DNA of 64,000 nucleotides from Adineta vaga (taxonomy: Eukaryota > Animalia > Rotifera). Below the pieces are notes generated by a model. It had not been told where the DNA came from and searched no databases. It saw nothing but the letters and a program-made list of their open reading frames with translations. This document shows positions 1,752-25,005 of this stretch, in pieces. The stretch is from assembly GCA_021613535.1 (NCBI GenBank), contig CP075493.1:9176001-9240000 (forward strand), read 5' to 3'. Made by a program: the position numbers and the translations under genes. Each line of letters opens with the position of its first letter. The stretch's first letter is position 1.

Positions 1752-4700
1752 TTATAATCGTGAATTGTCATCTAAAATAGAAAAGAAGAGAGGAGAATAA
1801 ACAATTCATTCTATTCTTTTACCATCCTGAGGAGCGGCACGTTTACGACCACGAGTAGCAGTTGAAGTTCGAGGTTTAGTTCCATGTCCACCGCCTGGTT
1901 CATCATTAAGAATACGACGATAGTTTATCAATGGTTGCCAAGCATCACCATCAATCGTTGCATTATGAACAAGTTTATCCACATGATCATAACTGAAAAG
2001 AAAAACAGCGATAGGTCGAAGAAGATCAATTCTTTCATAGTACTTACATGGCTTTTTTATCTGGCTTGAGAAGTTTCGAGGCAAATTCTGGTAAGACTTC
2101 AAGAAAGAGAATATTTGGACCTGGCTGTGTTGGATCATCATGTTTAAATAATGGTGTTAATGCAAAACGAATACATTCACTGGAAAAGATCAAACTTAGA
2201 TTCTAACAGAAAAATAAAAAAAAATAATTTTAGTATACCGATGAAGTGCAGCAAGTGCTTCTCGTTGTTTAGCCATATCAAGACCAAATGAAAGATTGAA
2301 TCGACGTGCTAATTCCTATTTACAGTACAAAACGCTGACAAACGTATTTGATTAAAATAAGTTTTCTTACTCGTAATGGCGATAAATCAATTGCAACTGC
2401 TTCATCATTACCAGCAGTTTCTTGTGCAGTATCGCGAGCAGCAACACAATCTTTATAAACCTATAAAACAAAGAATAGTTTAAGCCATTCTATAGATATC
2501 GAAAATTGACTTACCGCCATAAGACTGTAAGCCATTGTTTTCGCTGTATGAATTTTCGATATATCTCGAGCACGTGTAAATGTATTTTTGATAATATCAC
2601 CAAAATCATTGCTAAACTAAAGTGTAGAAATTAAAAGATAAACATTTCTTGTCGAAAAAAGAACTTTTTCAATTTACTTTAACATAATATTTTAAAATAT
2701 TCGTTGCAGCTTGAATTGGCAGGACATTATGCACGATTAATTTACAATAAGCAGCCAAGAGATTACGTTTTTTATGAAGAGTTTCAATTTTTGCTTGTTC
2801 ATCTTGATCTAAACGAAAGGTAATCGATGAATTATCAATGACAAATCATTTCTTCATTACTTTTTGGTTCATCAGCAAAAAACACATATGTATTTAAGAA
2901 TGTTAATAATGCTTGTATAAGATTTTCATTGATTTCAATAACAAGTACCTGATAATCAGGATTTTTATCAACTAAATGAGGACTCATGCTAATCAAAAGA
3001 TCACATAATGTTGAATAGGCATAATGACATATTTGAGTATTTGCATGTAACATTAATTTCTGACATAGAGCACATAATTTACGAGATCGTTTAACAAGTT
3101 TTTTCAGAATATCTTTATCGAATTGAATATCTAATTGATACAATCCCCAAAGTAAACTACGATTTGCAATACCAAAACATTTGTCCACAATTTCCGGTGA
3201 CATATCTTCATTATCAATAGCTGCTTTGAATAAGAGATGAATTTTATCCCATAAATCGACATTATCCAAATCATGACATCTACAAAAATCAAACATCTAC
3301 ATTTCTAATTTCAACAAAAATTGATTGTCTTACTGGTGAAAAGCATCTAATTTTCTCAAATTAAGTAATAATGGATATAGATCATCTTCATCGGCTTCAT
3401 CCTAAATCATATATACATTGATAAATCAAACAAGTCGAGCACTATATTGACATACCATTTCTTCGAAAATACCCATTGCTGCATTGAAATTTGCTAAAAT
3501 TTTATCGATAATGTTTCCTCGATGGGCAATAGCACGATTGGATAAAGTAAAACTAACATCACATACACATTCGAAACATTTTGAAACTGCATCAAAAATC
3601 TATACGAGACAAAAGGAGAAAAGTTTCTTCAAGAAAAGAAAATTTTATCAAACAAACTTCAGCTGTTGTATGACGTTGAACAATATCACTTAATGCAGTT
3701 AAATAAGCATCTAAATCACGCTCACGTCGAGTGGTTGTATAAACTTCATAATTAAAATGAAGTGGAATTTGAAGTAGATTAAGTAATTTATCAGCATCAG
3801 CGATATACTTTGAAAAATAATTGAAATTAATATACAAGAATGAAAGAAAGAATGATCTTACTTTGTTCAGTAATGGTGGTAAGGTACTTATAAAATGATC
3901 CGTTAATACTCGTTTATCATCTTCTTTTTGTTTTTGTTCTTTCATTGTTAACTAAGAAGAATAAATAAGAATGAAAAGAATTGATATCGAAAGAATTTAC
4001 TTTTCGATTGGGTTGACCTCGACCGATAGGATATTCACCAGTAGCTGCTTCTCGAACACAACAGACCATGATTTCAATTAAACAATTTTCATGTTGATCA
4101 TCAAGTGCTAAACATTTCAAAATACAAATTGATGCATTTTCCCCAACCGATAAAGCTTACGATCTTCTTCTTGATCTGGCGCTTCAAGTAAAATATCAGT
4201 CATACATTCCCAATCTTTCATCATAGGATGTTGATCCCACATCGAATCAACCAAATACGTCGCATGTTCATGAAGCTATGTAGATGAAAAAAAACATATA
4301 TTTGATTGATAATGAAATTCAGAAACTTACTTCACTTTCAATAAAGAATTGTACAAGTAAATGCATAAAAGCAGTATTTTGACTGCGTTTTTTTGAGGAA
4401 TTTAATGGTTGTTCAGCTTTATGAAATAATTTTTGATTGAGAAATTCTCCGGCTGCTTGTGCAACTTGACGATGTGAATGGTAGACAAGTTCATAGATAT
4501 TTTCACAATCTTTATCTTCAAGTATACGTTCATTAAATCTATTGACAAAAAATTGAAACGTTGATATTTCTTTATTTTATTTTTCAAATTCTTACTTTAA
4601 TATAGCTGTTAAAAGTTTAATGGCTTGAACAGCAACTTCATATTCACAATCCACTGTCATTTGTACAACACGATCCTAGGAAATCGAAGTGTAGATAATA

Positions 4701-6617: not shown

Positions 6618-9600
6618 TTAATCACTATCATCGGAATGTGAATTATTTTCTGTTTCACTTTGAGACATCGATTGCTCTTTCATATCAATTTCAACAGGTG
6701 CAAATTCTTTTTTTTCTTCTTCTTTAAATGCATATTCAATATCAAGAGTATAAGTAAATTGACTTTTTGGACGTATCCATTTTTCTGGTGTTTCTTCAGC
6801 GCCTGGTACAGCAACGGATCGAATCTATTGAAGAAAAAACAAAATATAGTTTTAATTGAGAAAAGAAAAATGTTTTTACTTGGCAATGTGAAATAAAAGC
6901 TTGTGACATTGAATATTCAACATCTGCAGTAGGTTCATATTTATCTGGTATTGGATCATATGATGGAACTGTTAATTTACATTCAAATATATGAGTTTTA
7001 TAAGCACCTTGATCTCGTTTTGGTAATTGATCAATACGCCAAACGATTGAGCGAAATGCTTGTTCATATTTAGCTACACCAACGGAAGCAGCCATCATCG
7101 CAGCAAGAGGATCACCACGATGAAGCATAAAACGATCAAGACCCTAAAAGGAATGAGCAATCTTCTTCAAACATAGTTAAATAATTTGATTTGTTCAAAA
7201 TTGTACTCGAAATATATCATTTTAATGGATTCTGACTTCAAGCAGAGCTACTGTCATCATCTTCATTGCGTGTCAATATTAATGCAAATTTCATTCCGTA
7301 TGATTTCATCTTTGGTGCTACTAGTCACAACGGAAGTGAGATCTTCGATTTTTTTTACTAAAGAAGCTTTCAAAAAAGTAGAAGATTATCTCAAAGGTCT
7401 TTATCGTTTCCTCTTTAGAGAAACACACACAGACCGTATTCGTGTTAATTATCATGTACGTCAGTTAAATTCGATAATGATTCTACGCATTATTACTCTT
7501 AACATCGTGACATACAATCATTATTCACATGTTACAAAAGAGAACTCCAATGAATCGTATTTCCTTCATCAATTATGTTGAGCTTTCTATTCTTGAATGA
7601 GATCAACAGACACTTCATCAAAAAAACTGAATGAACATATTTGATGTATCTCTTTTTTATTTCAATTACGTCTGCATATTAATCAGTTCCTATCTAATCA
7701 AATTATAGACTTCCTTCTATAAGAAGATTTTTTCTTTCTCTAGAGAATGACATCTGCAGAAATTTTATCGTCCTTACACGATACGACATACTCACACAAA
7801 GTGAACATCTCTCTCTCTCTAATTTACCTTGATTTTTCCTGCTTTACGACGAACACTATGTATTGCTCCATAACGAAAACGTTTTTCCACTCGAAACATG
7901 TAAACCCATGCATCGGGTATAGGAAAACGTATCTGAATGTTTTCACATGGACATTGTTCATCACTGTTATCATCACGTATATTAGCAGTTTTATCATTAG
8001 TTGCCATGGATGATGCTTTCGATAATATACTGATATTAAATGCATTTGAAACAATAACTTCAATACGAATATTAACTTGTCGTTCAATAACCGACATAAA
8101 ACAATAAACCTATAAAAGAAATGAGTATGATTTGTTTTTTGCTTGAAGAGAAAATTTTGATTGATTCCTACCTGTAATGGTAATTCAACATTTTGTTTTG
8201 GACGTGTACGAAAACGCATAATTTCAATTTTTTGACTATCTGGTGGTATTAATTTAAGTAAATGTGTATCTTCATATTCTTTAGCATCAATAATTGTTGC
8301 TAATTCAACTTGTTCTGGTTTAATCCAATATTCTTGTAATGTTTTATTAATAATGATTTCATTTCGTTTATTAATTTCTTTACCATGACGAAACCAATCA
8401 TTCATACCAATTTCAACAACAGGTTCTAGTCCATTGAGAAAAGCTAAGATAAATACACGTGTACGAGATTTATGTTTACAAATATGACGATATTTATCCA
8501 TATGTGCATAGTATTCATCAAGAATTTTAATTGTTACTTCTTCTTTAATATGTTTTTGTAATCGACTACGAGTAACAGGCATTGACCAGAATAAATCATC
8601 TAATACAATTGAAAATTGTTTTAAATAATCATAATTTAATGTGCCAAATTTAACAATTTCTTGTTGAACACAATTTGCATGATCGAGTAAAACTTGTTGA
8701 GCTTTATTTGGTCGAGTAAATTTTCGAAGTAACTTTTCTGGTAATGTTACAAGACGATCCATACGAACTTGAGGAATTTCTTTATAGTTAGCTTCGAAAA
8801 TTTTTAATGTATGAATTTTTGAATAGTGATCATGTTGTTGAAGACTTAATTTGCTTATTTGATACCATGTTTGCAATTCAATTTCAGCAAATGATTGTTC
8901 AGGTGCTTGAGACTGATAGAATCGTAATTTCTTCTCTTCGAATGATATACGAATATAACATTCTTGCCAATTACGTGTTTCACTAAATCTTTGAAATGTA
9001 CTTTTATATAAATCTTTTTGTCGTAATGGTACACGAATTTGTAATTTCCATCCATTTGGTTGTTCAGTTTGTAATTGTTCGATTTCAATATGATACGCTT
9101 CTAATGGCGCACTATCATCAATATCTGGTTCATGTAAATAATAATCCAATGGTGGTGATGGAGGTTTCTCTTGCTAGAAATAAGAAATATCAATTGAAAA
9201 ACTTTCTATGAATCATAACTAAACAACACCAACCTTGTTTACAATTGTAGTAGACAGACAAGACAACATATATACATGTTACAATATCAAAGCATACCCT
9301 GACTGTTTCATGTTGATTAAGCTTCGTTTCTTCTCGTTGCTCATCTTCTGGCCAATCTGTATTATGATTATTATTTTGTTTTTGATTAGTTTTATTTTTA
9401 ACAGGTTTTGAACGAAATGTTGCTAATGGATCAAATTCATCTTCGGTTTCCGATGATGATGAACTGGCATCATCGCTTGCTTCTTTATATTTCTTGGATG
9501 TTGATGGCGAGGGTGGTGGTGGTAATAATGGAACAGGAATATTCATATCATGAAAAGATGTATCAGATTTCTTTTCTGCAATCTTAAAAACCATTTTTTC

Positions 9601-10824
9601 ATCATCAGAATCATCGGAATCATTTCCATTTGCTTTTGCTTTTGCTTTTGCTTTTTTACTATCAAAATAACCATGTGGAACAATATTGCTATCATTATGT
9701 TCACATGTTGGTTCATGAATACAAATTGATGGTACTTCTTCATTTGATGGACGACGTATAATTGGTCGAGGTAATGCAGCTGGTGGAGATGCAACGGATT
9801 CCTGAGCTACTTCTTCTACAGTTGCTAATGTTGATGGTGGGTATTTATAAATACTTCCTAGAAGATCTTCTGTACTTTTTAACATATTGATATCGGTTTT
9901 CTTTGATAGACCACTTAATTTCGGATCGACAGCACACATTAAATCATCCGATTGAGTTAACCAATCGAGAAATTGATCATCAAACGGTGTTGTCGACGTT
10001 GTTGTACCTGTCATAATTGTCAATGCGGTTGCTTGAGCACGTAAAGTACTTGGTGATGTTGTTAGAGCATTCGTCGGTAAAGAATGATACGATGCAGCAG
10101 ATGGAATATTCGATTTTGCAGTTAATGAAGATGTTGGAGATGTTTTCTTTGTGTGATCTAATTTTTGAATATCAGTTAAACTATCACTTTTTAGTACTTT
10201 AACTGGTGTTGGTGATGCATTCGGTTTTTTATTAAGACCAAGAAGATCATAAGAAGATTGAACTTGATCCGAATGTTGTAATGAATTATCAGAATTATTT
10301 GCCGTTAATGTACTTGGATCGACATTTTGATCAAATAGAAGATCAATTGGCGATGCTTGAACAGGTGTAGTTGATACTTCATTTGTAATGGTCGGAATTG
10401 AAAATGGATTGATTAAATTAATACTTTTAGAATGCGTAATATTATTATTATTATTAAGAGATAAATTATTTGTTTTATTTTGAAGATCTTCAAATGGATC
10501 AAATGTTGTTGTTGTTGTTGTTAGAACAGTATTTGATTCATTCTTATTTGTATTCCAGTTAGATGATGATAGAAAAGTATCATTTCCATTTTGTGGTCGA
10601 TCAGATTCATTATTCGTTGTTTCAATTATAAATGGACTATCGTCAAATCGTTGTGAAGATGCAGATAGTTTCATATCAGTTGAAATCCCAAATGGATCAA
10701 TATTTGATTGAGATAAATTTGTATCAGTTGATATACCAAATGCATCCACTGTCGATGATGTATCAAATGGATTGTTTGGGTGATTATCATCTGAACCGAA
10801 AACACCAGCAAATGTACTAAACAT
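6618..10824 (-). CDS. stnB: Stonin / stoned-B endocytic adaptor (NPF/DPF-rich N-terminus, stonin-homology and mu-homology domains)
   Basis: N-terminal NPF, DPF and DAF motifs; GWKLQIRVP...RNWQECYIRI; CENIQIRFPIPDAWVYMFRVEKRFRYGAIHSVRRKAGKIK; GVAKYEQAFRSIVWRIDQLP. Confidence 0.9.
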
Positions 10825-11754
10825 CTTGATGATTATTGAATCGTTCTGATTAAAAAATCGATCATGACGTGATACTAAAACATAAAAATAATATCTATGT
10901 ATATATAGCAAATAGTTATTATTATTAATAGTAGTGATAAAGAGAAAGAAAGAGAATCAGTTTAGATTTTTTTTAGAAGAGAAGAATGTCAAATGACAAT
11001 CCGAACGACGTCAACGCCTCCGCATTATTTTCTTTCTTTAAGGCTGTTTTCTGTTTCTCGTCGCATTCTTTTTTTTTCTCTTCTCCATTCTTTATTTCCT
11101 TATTCAGTTCAGTGCGTTCAACTCGCGCGCTGTTAAGTAAACAATAATAACAGAAAAGAAAGAACGATAAAGACAAAGCTAAAAAACATGTATATACATC
11201 CATTAGCAAACAGAGAAAAAAATGACAAACAAAGTCAGATAGATTTGATTGGTTCAAAGCGATATTTTTGATTAGAATGAAGCTTAAATCATTGAACGAT
11301 TTACTATAGACTGATATACTTTCCTTCTCAAAAAGGAGAGAATTACTGTTGAATAGAGGTCGCTAGTTTGTGTTCATAAAAATATGTGATATTTTGCTTC
11401 CAGAAAAATGGAAAAAATAACATATCTCATTTTAAAAGTATTGACCTTTCGGAATAACATCAACGACGTATGTGAAATCTTAGAGATTGAATGTAATTCT
11501 TTGCAGAATCAACTAATGAATTATCTGAGCATGATCTTGAACTTTTTTAAATGTCGTTTCTTATAGAAAATTAGAGAAACATATTTTTATTATTCAGGTA
11601 AATTTAGCTTTGACGTCCTTAAGATGATCTAGAACAATTTTCTATATCGAGTAAATGAAATAATAGAAAAGAGTAGTCTCTGTGAGTACACACTCATATT
11701 AAACCTTTCCAAAGAGAAAACAATTCTGAATAATCAATAAAACGAGTATAATAT

Positions 11755-13782: not shown

Positions 13783-16700
13783 TCATTCTCCTTCTTCTTC
13801 AAACCAAATCCGAGTTCGATTGAACAGAGTTTTCTATAGACAAGGAAAATGATTTCTTTTTATATTCACCAAAAAAGAATATCTACTTGTAATTTTTGTA
13901 GCTTTTGTTCTAGCAAATTAATTCGTAAATCTTTACGTTCGTTGCGTTCTTGTAATTCTGCAATTTGTTGTCGATAAGATTCTTCAACAGATCGCTAGAA
14001 AAAGAAAGAAATCAAAGAGACTTGTATCACTATTTTTATACCAGTTTATCATTAATCAATAATTCAATATCACCGATTAGATCATTCGAATAAGGACGTA
14101 ATGATTGAACTAGTGAAAAACTCGATGATGATGCTGTTGATGTAATCGGAATGACCAATGCTTGATTTTGATTATCACAGCTAGGATTTTGTATACTAGG
14201 AGGTGAATGTTTTAATTTCGATCTAAACTCTCTAAGATCATATACAGATTCGAGAATAAAGTACATTATTTTTACTTTGATGACAATCGTCGATTTGAAC
14301 GACAGATCGGTGTTTTGTCTGTTTCATTTTCATAAGTTATTTCTTTTTCATTCATCTCTTTTATAGGTGATAATGTTGGTTGCGTAGTTGCAGGTGGATT
14401 TGTTAGACATGACGCAATTGATGCTAATGTATTAAATGCACCTATCACTTGTTCTGCTGCTTCTTTCTTTGCTTTTTCAACACCAAGTCGATTTTGAGCA
14501 TATTCATATAGTTTTCGTTCAGCTTCGGGATAATCTCGACAACCTTCGAGAACATCTTCTTTCGAAAGAGAAAATAATTCTGAATAACCAACACTACGAA
14601 CATCAGCTGTTCGACGATTAGCACCATCGATATTTAGTATCCCAATTTCACCAAAAAAATCACCTGCTACCAAACGTGTAAGAACATCCTTTTTATCGCT
14701 AAAAAATATTTTCAAATTTTAAATGAATTTCAGAATTTCTTTTAAAATTCGATTTACTTGACAACTTCGAGAACACCATCAGCTATGATGAACATTTCAC
14801 GTGCAACTTCACCTTTGCGACAGATAATATCTCCAGGTGTAAAGATGTATGCACGCATTTTCAGAACAAGATCATGCAAAAACTCAGGTTGGCATTCATG
14901 AAAGATAGTGACCTGAAAAGAATAAAAACGAATTTTAATGCATTCTATCGGAAAAGTGATTATTTATTGTCATAATCAATCATGAAGAATTTTCTCAACA
15001 TTAAACTTCTATCATATAAGTACCTTCTTCAATGTTCCTAAATTCACATGTAACGCTAGTTCTGTTTTGAGTTTATCCGGTAAAAGTTTTATTGAATGAA
15101 CATCTCCAGCGCCTGACATTCGTCCACGTGACCATGAATAATCATACCAACGTTGCACTCGTCGTTGCATTTCAGGTGGTACATTATGTGTACGCATATA
15201 TTGTTTCGCACTATCCTATAGAAATAGTAATCAATGAAAATCGTTCGTTTCATATTCATTTTTTTATTCTAACTAGTAAACGTTCAAATTCTAATCGACT
15301 TGCATTTCGATTCGTAATCACATTGCCAACTTGTCCTAGAAGAAGATAAGAAATTAGTTTTTCGACATTTCAAAAAAAAACAATATCTACCTATAATGAT
15401 CGAATAAACAAATATTCCAATCATATAACCACTAATAGCGAAAACAGCCCTCAAAAATAAAATGAATAATAGGATGTGCATCTGTGTATTTTACTCGTTA
15501 AAGACAAGTTTGAAATGATTTCTCAATCTGATATGAATTCTTGCTTACCCACGATAATAGCTATGACGAAAACGGCGAACAAATGAACGCTTATTAGAAA
15601 AGCGTAACTAAAATAATGAAAAGTATAGTTTCAAATAAAAAAAGCAAACGATTACAAAACATTGATTAATATACAATGAAGCATTAATATTTACCGTCTG
15701 TTCGAAAAATTTTTGAGCCATCTAACTTTGACGAATAGAAAGAAAAACAAAACCGAAGAGAGAGAAATAGAAATTAGAAAAACTCGAGCTCTTTCGTACT
15801 TTCTAGAAATTCGAAATAATTCAGAATAAAGAAATCTACTCACTGCCAATTCGTTTCCGGTGGTGGTAAATCTCCGATAGTCGTTAATGTTAATGTTGAC
15901 CAATAGAGACAACGAAGATACATTCTTGCTATTTGAGAAAAATTTCCCACTGGTTTAGGATAAGACCAAAATCCAACAAAACCTTCGGCTTTTGATACCA
16001 TAAAATAAAATGCTGCTAGCCAATGACCCAAAAGTAGAAGTATATGAAGAAGATTTAGTACACGATAAGTATTTGGATAAATAGTCCGTGATTCTTGATA
16101 ATAATACAATTGAAATGTTCGATAGAGTTTAAAAAAACGTGGAAAACGAAGAATTGGTATAGTACCAAATTTAATTTGTAATAAATCTAATGGTGTTAAA
16201 GATAAAATATCCAAAAGAAAATGAGATGAACGAATATAATTCATAGCAAGTTTGGTATTATCATAAACAAGTAAACCTAAAATAGTTTTATTTCTTATTT
16301 CGATTTCAAAATAAATCATGTTAAGATATTTTCTACTAATAGTTCTTTAATAAAATTATTAGTCGAAATACTGGAACGGATTAAACAATATCCTGTTTTT
16401 TTTTTCGGTAGATCATAGCAAAAATATGATTAGATCGTCTCTTGAATTCAGTTATATTTCTCATGATTGAAATAGTCAGTTAATTCTCGTTGTCTCTCTA
16501 TCTTTTTCTTACCTTGTTCGAGATAACCGGTACGAAATTGAATAAAAATATCGAGAAAATACATCGAATCTGCGATATAATCAATAATTTCCCAGATTTG
16601 CTCATAATCAGTTTGTAATGGTTCAAATGCTTGTCGGGCAATTGAAAACCATAAATTATACAAAACAAAAATATTCAATAGGATTAACCAATAGAATAAA

Positions 16701-17691
16701 AAGGATTCATCGGTTGATATGACAAAATAATTACATGAACGAAAGATTCGTTGTAAAAATTCATAACGTGTTTGAATTGGTTCATCTTTTTCACTATTTA
16801 ATCGAAGATTTTGTTTAATAGGATCTTTAAAGAAAACAAATATTTACAATGAAGTTTTCTATGTAGTCTACCTTTAGTTCCCATTCCTCGATAACCATAA
16901 CGATTGGAGAATCTTTGTAAAAATGAATCTTCTCGTGTTAATCCTTTCGTTGATTTACTGATCAGATTTAGCTTTCGATGCGGATGCTAACAGATTGATA
17001 AAGAAAAAAGAGTAACATTTGAATTAAGCAAATAAAACAAGAAGTAAATTTTTCTAAATATAATCACCATGTATTTGATGTGATTGCATTCAATCAAATC
17101 TTGTTTTTTACAAAAATCTAGCTAGCGTAGCATATTTCTTCATTTGAACAATTTTTTTTCGCCTCTTATTCTATCTCTATTTGAAGTATAAGTAAATAAT
17201 GGCAAACAAATGTTGATAATTTTTTTCGAAATTCTCCATCATACTCAATTAGATGAAGAGCAACGAGCGTGATGTGAAGATGATGAAGAAGAGGAAACAA
17301 TAGAATTTTCTTCCTCATTCTATCAAATTCATTTCTATGAGTTTGATTAACGACATAAGACTCATTCATTTACTGACGGACGAAATCATTCGAAAGAACA
17401 TTTATGTTTTAGTTCGGCAATGAAATCTTATTACTAGAAAACTATACTCACATCATCAATTGATGATGAAGTTGGTAATTGATTAGCAACGAGAGATGAT
17501 CGACGCAGGTAATCACTTGTTGTTAATGTTTCACTTGCATTTGATTGACGATGTTGAGATAAATGTTGTGGATATGGTGATGAACAAGCACCTTCTTTAT
17601 TAAGTAAGTCATTTAAAACAGGTGTTATAGCAGCCAATGGCATTTCAATTGCTATTAGAGGATCATAACTAGAATAATCAATGACAGGCAA
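13783..17691 (-). CDS. CNGL: Cyclic nucleotide-gated channel subunit, CNGL-like; alternative S6 exons; exact start uncertain (ATG at 17643 possible)
   Basis: Pore YWSTLTLTTIGDLPPP; C-linker GQVGNVITNRNASRLEFERLLD...RWYDYSWSRGR...LPDKLKTELALHVNL; binding domain GDFFGEIGILN...RRTADVRSVGYSELF; C-terminal coiled coil. Confidence 0.93.
15391..15449 (-). other. Alternative S6 exon B (59 nt), AVFAISGYMIGIFVYSIIIG
   Basis: Flanked by AG (15451-15450) and GT (15390-15389); phase fits both flanking constitutive exons. Confidence 0.85.
15549..15607 (-). other. Alternative S6 exon A (59 nt), YAFLISVHLFAVFVIAIIVG
   Basis: Acceptor ttttag and donor gtaagc; same length and phase as exon B; hydrophobic and homologous to S6. 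Confidence 0.8.
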
Positions 17692-18797
17692 TAAAAATAC
17701 ATCGATTCTCTTCTATATATATATATAGATGACAGTCATCGATGTCATTTCTGATTTAAAAATAACATTTTACGAATGACAGCAGAAATCCAATTAGATA
17801 TTGTTTCACTCAATTATCTTACGAAGAAACGACAAAGTTCCTTTTCGCTCAATTCTCGTCACACAAATATAAACATTAAGATCACTCTAAGGAAATATAA
17901 ATTACTTTCAATTTTTTTTCTATACAAGATAAGTAAAAAAATGACAATTCTCCTATGAATTACTGATATGATTTGAAAAATCTTACCTACAACAGGACAA
18001 CGTAGATGAATAAATCTGTTGATATTTTCTCGAATCGCCTGACGAGATTGCTTTCTCTTTATATAATAAATTAATTTTATGCTCGATATCTCTTCTTTCT
18101 CTTTCTCTCTCTCTCTCTCTCTATCTGTTTTTTCCGTACTACTTCTCTGTCAAGTAATTTTATTCAATCTAAGAGAGCGAAAGAAGATATAGACTATAAA
18201 CTTGTTTAGATGAGACATGCCTGCCTTTTCGACGCATAAATGAACAGAACATTGTGTGACACAAGAAGAAGAAGAAAAAACTAAAGAAGTTTTCTCATAC
18301 TAGATCATATTAACTTCTTTCCTTGAATATATTTTCTCTCTCAGAGAATTTTCATTTGTAGACAATGACAGTTCATCGATTTCTCTCTAACATTGTTATC
18401 CAGACTGATCTAATATCTGAGTCGAAATAAAAAAAATGTTAAACAGAACGAAGGAACGAACCAAACGGAAATTGTCTAGTTAGTCATATATATATATATA
18501 TGAATTATAACAAGCAACAAACCTAATTCAAATTAGAATGTGCATGTAAGTCGATTGAACCGAAGCAATGCCATTTTACATCAAGATTCGCCTAAATAAC
18601 TATGAAATAGTGCAGAAAGAATAGAAAAAAAGCTGTGCATAATCTTTTTCTTTCTAAGAGACATTTAATGAAAGTATAGATATATATTCAGTATAGAATA
18701 ATTCATTATATTTATTAAAAATGAAAGAGTTTCCAATCGAATAAAGTATAGAATAGTTTATTATCCTTGTTGAGAAAGCAAAAAAATACAATAGGTA

Positions 18798-22963: not shown

Positions 22964-25005
22964 TCAATGCATATCAATTAAATTATGATGTTGTGTTGTT
23001 GATAACTGTACAACATCACGTATGTTCAGATTTTCCGTCTTGGTTGTAAATTGTACAGCAGTACGTGTTGTTAATCGATATTGTTGAATATCATCCGATT
23101 CAGTTTCTATTTTACTATTTTCATTTTCCAATTTTGTTACAGATTTCATTCGATAACGTTTTATAAAATGATATAATAATATACTAATCACTACTATCGA
23201 GCCATTAACAACACCAATGGCAATACTAATTGGAAATGAAGGTGTTAGGGCGATAGTTTTAATCGTTGTAATAAGCTCAGTTGTAGTACTAAAGTCAATC
23301 GTTGACTGTTTTGTACTCGTTGTTGGAGGAAGAGTTGATGGTATTGTTCGAATTGTTGGAATCTAAAATTCATATTATTATAAATAATATCGAAGAAAAA
23401 AGAATAAAATAATTTTACTGTTCGATTTAGTATAGTAACTGTTGCCGTAGTTATTGTTGTGCTTGTTGTTGAAGTTGTACTAGGTTCTAGTATTGTATAA
23501 AATGTCCAAAAACTACTATCTGTTATGCCCATCGAGTCACGTAAACAAGTTGCAATGGGTAGAAACACGCCTGCATCAAGTGAAATATAAAAATTTTGAT
23601 TTGTACTAAAAACAATATCCGATATGATTTCTAAACGATCTGAATGATAAATAACATTATTCGGTTGTTTAAGTACGTTATAAGTAACAAAATCTACGTT
23701 TGTTGATGCTATTTTAAAACGAATAAAAGCATTAGTATTAGGTCGACTGAACGTTATCCCAGGTGGATATAGTAATACCCAATTAGATTGATATTTTGAT
23801 ACTAGACCAGTAGGAAAATGAGTTGCATTATTAATGTAAAGTGTATTACGACTATCGGAAACTAATTGAACAGTAAAACGAAGACATGTTGAATCACCTT
23901 GATTACCAATTGAATCCACTCCTGCAAAACAAAATAAGTTTTGTCCAACTTGATTGGCAGTTGCTGAATAAAAAACTTTAAAATTGTACAAAGTTGGATC
24001 GTATGGATCAGTGAATGTAGCTGATTGAGTAAAACCATTTGGATAGACGGCAATAATATTTGCTAATGTTGCATTGGGACATTGAATACGAATTCGAATC
24101 ACCAATGTCATGACTTCACCAGGTTCAACAAAAATACATTGATCAGCAGGTGCATCTCCAATATATAGCGGTGGTGAAGAACATGTGATATTCGTATTCC
24201 AAACATTAAAAACAAATTGAATAGGAACACGTGAAAGTGGCACAGTACTCGTATCATTTTCATAATCAAGTACTGTGAATGCTACGGCATAGAAACCTAC
24301 TGTAGCAGGAGTAAATCGTAGAACACAACTTGTTTCATTGAGATATGTTGAAGCAGGTAAACTTAGTAATGATCGACATATTCCACCGCATTCTTCAGTT
24401 GTATTTGCCCAAATACATGTATAACGATCAAAATCGTTATCAGCAACATTTATTTTGATATTATATGTAAGAGAACGACGAAGTCGAATGATTGGCAACA
24501 TGGTTACTATTGGGGCTTGATTGTATCGGCCATTGGATCTGAGAAAAGTATTAATTTCGACTGCAATTGACCAAGCACCACCGCCAGTAACCAAAGCAAA
24601 CCAATCATTACCAGTAAATATTGCTCGAAAACGATAATTTGGTGATACTTGAAATGTAAATCGTCCCTCACCATTAACATATTGTTCAATTTGATTGTAT
24701 CCAGTACATGGAACTGTTACTGCACTCAAGGTACTAACATTCGGTGGACATGATGACATACACTTCAAATTTCCCGAACCAATCATATAATTTCCAGCAA
24801 TTATCTGTGGATTCGTACATGGCCACCATGCATAATTCCAAGCATGACGTTGTAATACTTCAATCCGAAGTGGATTTGTCGTTGAATTGATCACACGCCA
24901 TGTTACCATCGATCCACGAAAATGAGCATTGAACACCGAAGTTATCTGTACCAAGAATATCAAAAAGTAGAAAGTGTGCCTGATTTGACCTTCCATTTCT
25001 TCCAT
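22964..25005 (-). CDS. Type I membrane glycoprotein: signal peptide, HFRG-type Cys-rich ectodomain with Ig/cadherin-like repeats, Thr-rich stalk, TM helix
   Basis: Signal ...VFNA then HFRGSMVTWR; NQAPIVTMLP; INVADNDFDRYTCIWA; an intron at about 23363-23416 joins the Thr-rich stalk to the TM segment ISIAIGVVNGSIVVISILLYHFIKRYR. Confidence 0.8.

Follow-up and report, generated by a model that had tools for sequence, protein, structure and literature searches.

Organization of the channel gene

The window, i.e., the whole stretch of 64,000 nucleotides from Adineta vaga that was analysed, harbors on its minus strand a gene which, judged by its domains and motifs, is a CNG cation channel of this bdelloid rotifer. 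Thus, the Ion_trans domain (PF00520) matched two exons, with E=1.8e-12 for the pore exon and 4.8e-8 for the other one, and the cNMP_binding domain (PF00027) was likewise found in two exons, one of these matches lying above the curated cut-off. The finding of both domains in the exons of the gene bears out the assignment as a CNG channel made in an earlier note on this DNA. Furthermore, the gene contains the filter motif TLTTIGD with PPP after it, and its C-linker sequence recurs in orthologues whose full length aligns to the structures of CNGA3 and CNGA1 (E about 1e-118). The best matches outside rotifers were insect proteins of 1,400-2,200 aa as well as mollusc and annelid proteins, which share the sequences TIGDLP.PETN and QVGNVITNRNA, and the gene presumably belongs to the Cngl-type clade, named after Drosophila Cngl. 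The channel gene is flanked by two long ORFs of about 586 residues each, both on the minus strand (23248-25005 and 9193-10956), one of which opens with a signal-like hydrophobic stretch, the other being rich in Ser, Thr, and Asn.

Read along the minus strand, the region in question starts with the pore exon (15844-16276), which encodes the later transmembrane segments and the P-loop and is covered by RNA contigs. Its acceptor is ttttag followed by G (16277/16276), and it ends with ...TLTTIGDLPPPETNW plus CA, followed by the donor gtgagt (GT at 15843-15842). Between the pore exon and the S6 exons lies a micro-exon of 27 nt (15695-15721), which is in frame and adds nine residues to the outer loop that leads from the selectivity filter to S6 (QWLKNFSNRR across the junctions). 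It is followed by exon A (15549-15607; acceptor ttttag, donor gtaagc) and exon B (15391-15449; acceptor tttgag, donor gtagat), both 59 nt in length and separated by an intron of 99 nt (15450-15548). The subsequent C-linker exon (15274-15335), encoding (G)QVGNVITNRNASRLEFERLL, offers an acceptor common to A and B; it is conserved in all loci, and RNA joints lead into it. Re-reading of the minus strand thus confirmed the two 59-nt exons at 15549-15607 and 15391-15449 in all respects, including their AG/GT borders and their common phase. The neighboring borders given in the earlier note have to be shifted by one base each, as the last base of the pore exon is 15844 (not 15843) and the first base of the C-linker exon is 15335 (not 15336).

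Exons A and B are alike in being entered in phase 2 and left in phase 1. In each of them, 19 codons are framed by two single bases, of which the first ends a split codon and the last opens a Gly codon finished by the C-linker exon, and the translations, (H/R)YAFLISVHLFAVFVIAIIVG for A and (Q/R)AVFAISGYMIGIFVYSIIIG for B, each comprise a whole S6 helix. Either exon alone leaves the frame intact. Joining A and B leads to a TGA stop within B, and leaving out both leads to a frameshift (59 mod 3 = 2), so the statement of the earlier note that inclusion of both or neither disturbs the frame holds. In a scan of open AG-59 nt-GT exons on both strands of the 64-kb window, A and B reached S6-peptide scores of 95 and 78, respectively, compared with 31 for the next-best candidate. 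The pair is not a chance match, and no third S6 copy was found in the window.

Gene copies in the genome

A search of the genome (6 contigs, 100.8 Mb) revealed an ohnologue of the gene on contig 4 (L002), with a protein identity of 84% in the pore exon. Pairwise alignment of the window with this ohnologue resulted in 24/27 identical positions for the micro-exon, 55/59 for exon A, and 46/59 for exon B, and the introns showed an identity of 53%, which is about chance level. Further CNG paralogues with a single S6 each were detected, namely at least two pairs (L003/L004 and L006/L007) as well as L005 and L008. In addition, the genome encodes a CNGB-like paralogue (L009; contig 2, about 2144483-2147896), likewise with a single S6, which is followed by a QIRDV motif.

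RNA evidence for both exons

Contigs from four RNA runs of one study (X1-X4) were placed on positions 13800-17800. They were taken from Logan, where rare variants are dropped, and their depth was only 3-8. Since their joints form a GT..AG chain on the minus strand, the four runs represent RNA. Joints from the pore exon to the micro-exon (15844 to 15721) and from the micro-exon to exon A (15695 to 15607) were present in X1 and X4, the copy in X2 belonging to the ohnologue, and exon A was joined to the C-linker exon (15549 to 15335) in X1, X2, and X3. The chain of pore exon, micro-exon, exon A, and C-linker exon is thus documented in RNA, and the direct connection of the pore exon to A assumed in the earlier note, in which the micro-exon had been missed, has to be replaced by a path through the micro-exon.

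Exon B was joined to the C-linker exon (15391 to 15335) in X1, X2, and X4 and also in the ohnologue, and the contig depths of the A and B joints to the C-linker exon were similar (3-6). Since the RNA letters between the joints correspond to the micro-exon and the end of exon B of L002, both gene copies express the form with micro-exon and A as well as the form with B joined to the C-linker exon. RNA from which the intron between B and the C-linker exon has been removed can no longer turn into the A form, so B is part of a sizeable share of the transcripts. Of the junctions named for checking in the earlier note, those from A and from B to the C-linker exon were recovered, and direct joints from the pore exon to A or to B were absent among the 15 of 18 joints listed. 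Within the same 15 of 18 joints, none led into the B acceptor (15844 or 15695 to 15449), and none connected A to B, an absence that contigs cannot prove. Hence, exon A was spliced in RNA at both flanks, and exon B, among the listed joints, at its donor side only. The interpretation given in the earlier note was accordingly upheld in part: A and B are each spliced to the C-linker exon, but no listed joint enters the acceptor of B, so a productive B mRNA and strict mutual exclusivity are inferred.

All listed contigs containing B kept the A-B intron unspliced, in three runs (X1 rec2, 15390-15577; X2 rec6, 15390-15608; X4 rec18, 15390-15546) and in the ohnologue (loose end at 15544), and RNA retaining this intron meets an in-frame stop just past A. 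These contigs, the missing joint into the B acceptor, and the weak GAG type of this acceptor in every locus would all be in line with an exon B that occurs only in unproductive "poison" transcripts, in which retention of the intron or inclusion of A plus B leads to a premature stop and decay and thereby lowers the channel output. We regard this explanation as unlikely. Other introns were retained in the same libraries, e.g., in X1 rec3 (15695-15873) and in the ohnologue after the C-linker exon, which indicates that pre-mRNA is present and that retention is not peculiar to the A-B intron.

In the 5' part of the gene, the RNA contigs skipped 466 bases at 16986-17451 on the minus strand. The ends of the skipped stretch read GC..AC on the plus strand, and the joint contains one additional letter, which could be due to a non-canonical or shifted splice site or to a strain difference.

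Conservation of the exon pair in bdelloids

Bdelloid DNA was collected from contigs with near-identical pore exons and by a metagenome scan, yielding about ten distinct loci or sequences from Adineta, Rotaria, and metagenomes. Among the loci were those of Rotaria sp. Silwood1 (L010) and the metagenome contigs L011 and L014-L017, as well as L021-L032 and L074. Every bdelloid locus covering the region harbored A and B in the same order, with 59 nt and AG/GT borders each, and the micro-exon was present in every bdelloid locus checked for it. The exon A protein was identical in nine distinct DNA sequences, which displayed synonymous changes only, and a tenth locus (L021) showed one changed residue. 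Exon B varied at about seven positions, among them Ser/Thr at position 6, Gly/Ser at 7, Ile/Val/Thr at 10, Tyr/Phe at 15, and Ile/Ser/Leu at 17.

Calculation of dN/dS (pairwise-summed Nei-Gojobori, 9 distinct sequences each for A and B) resulted in values of about 0.003 for exon A and 0.157 for exon B, compared with 0.015 for the end of the pore exon, each at a synonymous divergence of about 0.5, and 0.135 for the micro-exon at a synonymous divergence of about 0.8; as the pairs are non-independent, the figures are descriptive. Exon B evolves faster than exon A. By these substitution patterns, B is nevertheless clearly kept as a coding sequence, and both exons are under purifying selection across bdelloids. 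The conservation and dN/dS check in other rotifers that the earlier note had named therefore turned out positively for both exons, which are intact in all covering bdelloid loci. The concept of A and B as alternative S6 versions is supported in turn, both being spliced to the C-linker exon and both being under purifying selection.

The same data bear on the idea that B acts only through transcript decay. A poison exon needs no open S6-like frame, but B keeps its 59 nt without stops, reaches scores of 62-68 against the family S6 consensus, and shows the dN/dS of 0.157 over about ten loci and the two ohnologues. A decaying, functionless leftover of an exon duplication would likewise be more variable than its sister exon, and its upstream junction would go unseen, as is the case for B. 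This reading of B as a functionless remnant is nonetheless highly improbable, since its donor is used in RNA of three runs and of the ohnologue, and since its splice sites, length, and frame have been kept in all bdelloid loci although the flanking introns have diverged past alignment.

We therefore consider it probable that the S6 exon of this gene was duplicated in tandem and that A and B are used alternatively, with mutual exclusivity enforced by the reading frame, so that two subunits with a different pore-lining gate helix would be made. Exclusivity follows here from the frame arithmetic together with the conservation of both exons, and frame plus nonsense-mediated decay would be the simplest way to enforce it. 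Conserved pairing between introns of the docking/selector type gave no consistent signal when all intron pairs from eight loci were compared with shuffles using RNAduplex. Steric exclusion is unlikely, since the A-B intron measures 90-136 nt across loci and is thus long enough to be spliced.

Regarding the splice sites, the B acceptor was tttgag followed by G in all loci, and that of A ended in tag throughout (ttttag or ttctag). Within the A-B intron, a single block could be clearly aligned across nine distinct loci, namely the motif CAGAT(A/G)CACA(C/T)C (15472-15484, minus strand), which is located about 25-35 nt upstream of the B acceptor and was found in nearly all bdelloid loci. It may represent an element of splicing control or an atypical branch site.

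Origin of the second S6 exon

Outside bdelloids, orthologues with a single S6 were identified in molluscs, annelids, insects, spiders, a hemichordate, and others, leading to the consensus YVFTIVSYLIGVFIFATIVG. In the metagenome loci L086, L088, L093, and L096, S6 has a 59-nt exon of its own, which is bounded in the same way and lacks a second copy. A second S6 copy was also found neither in the paralogues L003-L009 nor in the non-bdelloid loci L018, L061, L086, L088, L093, and L096. As a single 59-nt S6 exon thus exists outside rotifers, the A/B pair can be traced back to tandem duplication of an ancestral exon, and such a pair has, on the loci compared, so far been seen only in bdelloids. This agrees with the statement in the earlier note that the arrangement was not known in CNGL orthologs, since the non-rotifer orthologues with this region covered have one S6 exon.

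In gapless alignments against the family S6 consensus, B scored 62-68 and A 48, with a background maximum of 31. The derived residues of A (His 8, Ala 11, Ile 15) were also detected in two non-bdelloid sequences that possess only an A-like S6, namely L018, which is a Logan contig (24% GC, pore-exon identity of 66%, S6 at 3987-4045), and P0318, in which S6 and the C-linker exon are fused. Accordingly, the A type may be older than bdelloids, and B either may have been lost in the lineages of L018 and P0318 or is yet to be found there.

Differences between A and B in the gate helix

Human CNGA1 possesses the filter T362-I363-G364-E365 and a single gate formed by F389 and V393 (PMC12375067). Counting from the filter, position 1 of the S6 exons corresponds to residue 375 of CNGA1, position 15 to F389, and position 19 to V393, and S6 of the Pecten orthologue aligned to human CNGA3 without gaps. 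At position 8, A encodes His and B Tyr, the latter being the family consensus, and at position 11 A has Ala and B the consensus residue Gly. At the F389 site, A has Ile, B has Tyr (Phe in other bdelloids), and the consensus is Phe; at the V393 site, A keeps the consensus Val and B has Ile. The difference between the two exons is consequently not limited to Gly and His, as had been described in the earlier note, but extends to both gate positions, which differ more sharply. Neither does the exchange of Gly for Ala appear special, as Ala is found at S6 position 11 in other CNG paralogues of the same genome as well (L006, L007, and L009). Helical periodicity would place position 8 on one face of the helix together with positions 15 and 19, so that it may point into the cavity.

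The ancestral single 59-nt S6 exon, once duplicated in tandem, would have given rise to two subunits sharing the voltage-sensor-like domain, selectivity filter, C-linker, and nucleotide-binding domain and differing in the gate helix. Form A would represent the invariant rotifer type, following the micro-exon that lengthens the outer pore loop, with Ile at the F389 site and Val at the V393 site, while form B would keep the aromatic gate residue of the family (Tyr/Phe) together with Ile at the second gate position, Tyr 8, and Gly 11. Very probably, one gene thus leads to two channels with different gates. Channels of type A and type B would most likely differ in gate tightness, open probability, or block, and mixed tetramers would be expected where both are made. 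With two versions of the gate helix kept in one gene and the subunit otherwise identical, the locus would offer, in minimal form, an experiment of nature on the influence of gate residues on open probability, leak, and block, one version carrying Ile for the gate Phe/Tyr and His higher up the helix.

Comparison with known channels

Exons 8/8a of CaV1.2 encode alternate versions of IS6 (PMC3060452). These represent the closest analogue, as equal-size tandem exons likewise swap the pore-lining S6 and the gate region within one gene. While CaV1.2 is a four-domain voltage-gated calcium channel, the rotifer gene encodes a subunit of a tetrameric CNG channel, so that, unlike in CaV1.2, a swap alters all four S6 helices or leads to a mixture. 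The choice of exon in CaV1.2 is regulated by PTB. In vertebrate CNG heteromers (CNGA1/CNGB1 and CNGA3/CNGB3), diversity likewise rests on the combination of subunits with different S6 and gate residues, but these subunits are encoded by separate genes, whereas the rotifer would achieve this from a single gene by splicing. Since the rotifer has a separate CNGB-like gene (L009), the exon pair is no replacement for a missing beta subunit, and the mimicry of alpha/beta heteromers through splicing that the earlier note had put forward would be a conjecture. In the searchable literature, we found no CNG channel for which S6-swapping exons had been reported, nor did we find a description of a mutually exclusive S6 pair of this kind in rotifers.

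The micro-exon and annotated protein models

An optional in-frame cassette was found at the same intron position as the micro-exon in Cngl-type genes of other protostomes. In insects, it comprises 28 residues and is present in isoforms X1, X3, X5, and X6 of Lucilia and missing in X2 and X4, with a similar situation in Acanthoscelides. Cassettes of seven residues occur in molluscs (Haliotis isoform X3 and Biomphalaria) and one of nine residues in the annelid Owenia. Trp is the first residue in the rotifer, Haliotis, and Owenia. Judged by position and frame, the rotifer micro-exon is the local version of an old feature, although the protostome genes with the cassette have a single S6 exon, unlike the bdelloid pair.

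Among annotated bdelloid proteins, all of which are gene predictions and not cDNA, the model of Rotaria socialis (P0235) has a B-type S6 immediately after the pore exon, and those of R. sordida (P0236), Adineta ricciae (P0237), and A. steineri (P0241) proceed from the pore exon via the micro-exon to A. Two models of Didymodactylos (P0244 and P0248) join the pore exon to A without the micro-exon, and such models suggest that the micro-exon may be optional in rotifers, too. As predictions, the models show only that each of these exon combinations is open and plausible. A search of short database proteins with a 125-residue query around S6 of P0235 revealed no spliced ORF joining the pore exon to B, but only genomic read-throughs and single-exon fragments.

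These models, together with the RNA joints, raise the question of a coordinated exchange, in which the micro-exon plus A would be used as an alternative to B joined straight to the pore exon, so that outer loop and gate would change together. In RNA, the micro-exon was seen only with A, the sole annotated model with B (P0235) lacks it, the three models mentioned above carry it together with A, and insects and molluscs use an exon at this site as an optional cassette. The two Didymodactylos models speak against a strict coupling, and the upstream partner of B was not among the listed RNA joints, the models being predictions throughout; taken as a whole, we consider a coordinated exchange quite improbable as the explanation of the exon pair, and we maintain frame-enforced alternative use of A and B as the preferred one. 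If both segments were exchanged together, the form with micro-exon and A would combine an aliphatic Ile gate with a ring of cavity-facing His residues, possibly sensitive to pH or metals, and B would provide the canonical aromatic gate. As a tentative extension, which we would sooner doubt than assume, an exchange of outer loop plus gate would give functionally distinct, possibly heteromeric CNG channels, and the cell-specific choice between them would be under the control of the conserved intron motif.

In many phyla, a great number of models of this channel family break off precisely where the pore exon ends, and in Rotaria sp. Silwood1 (L010, 1099-1530) the gene is split into two models after this exon. 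This is likely an annotation artefact, caused by the tiny size of the next exons (27 and 59 nt), and such short exons would thus explain truncated or split automatic gene models in many phyla.
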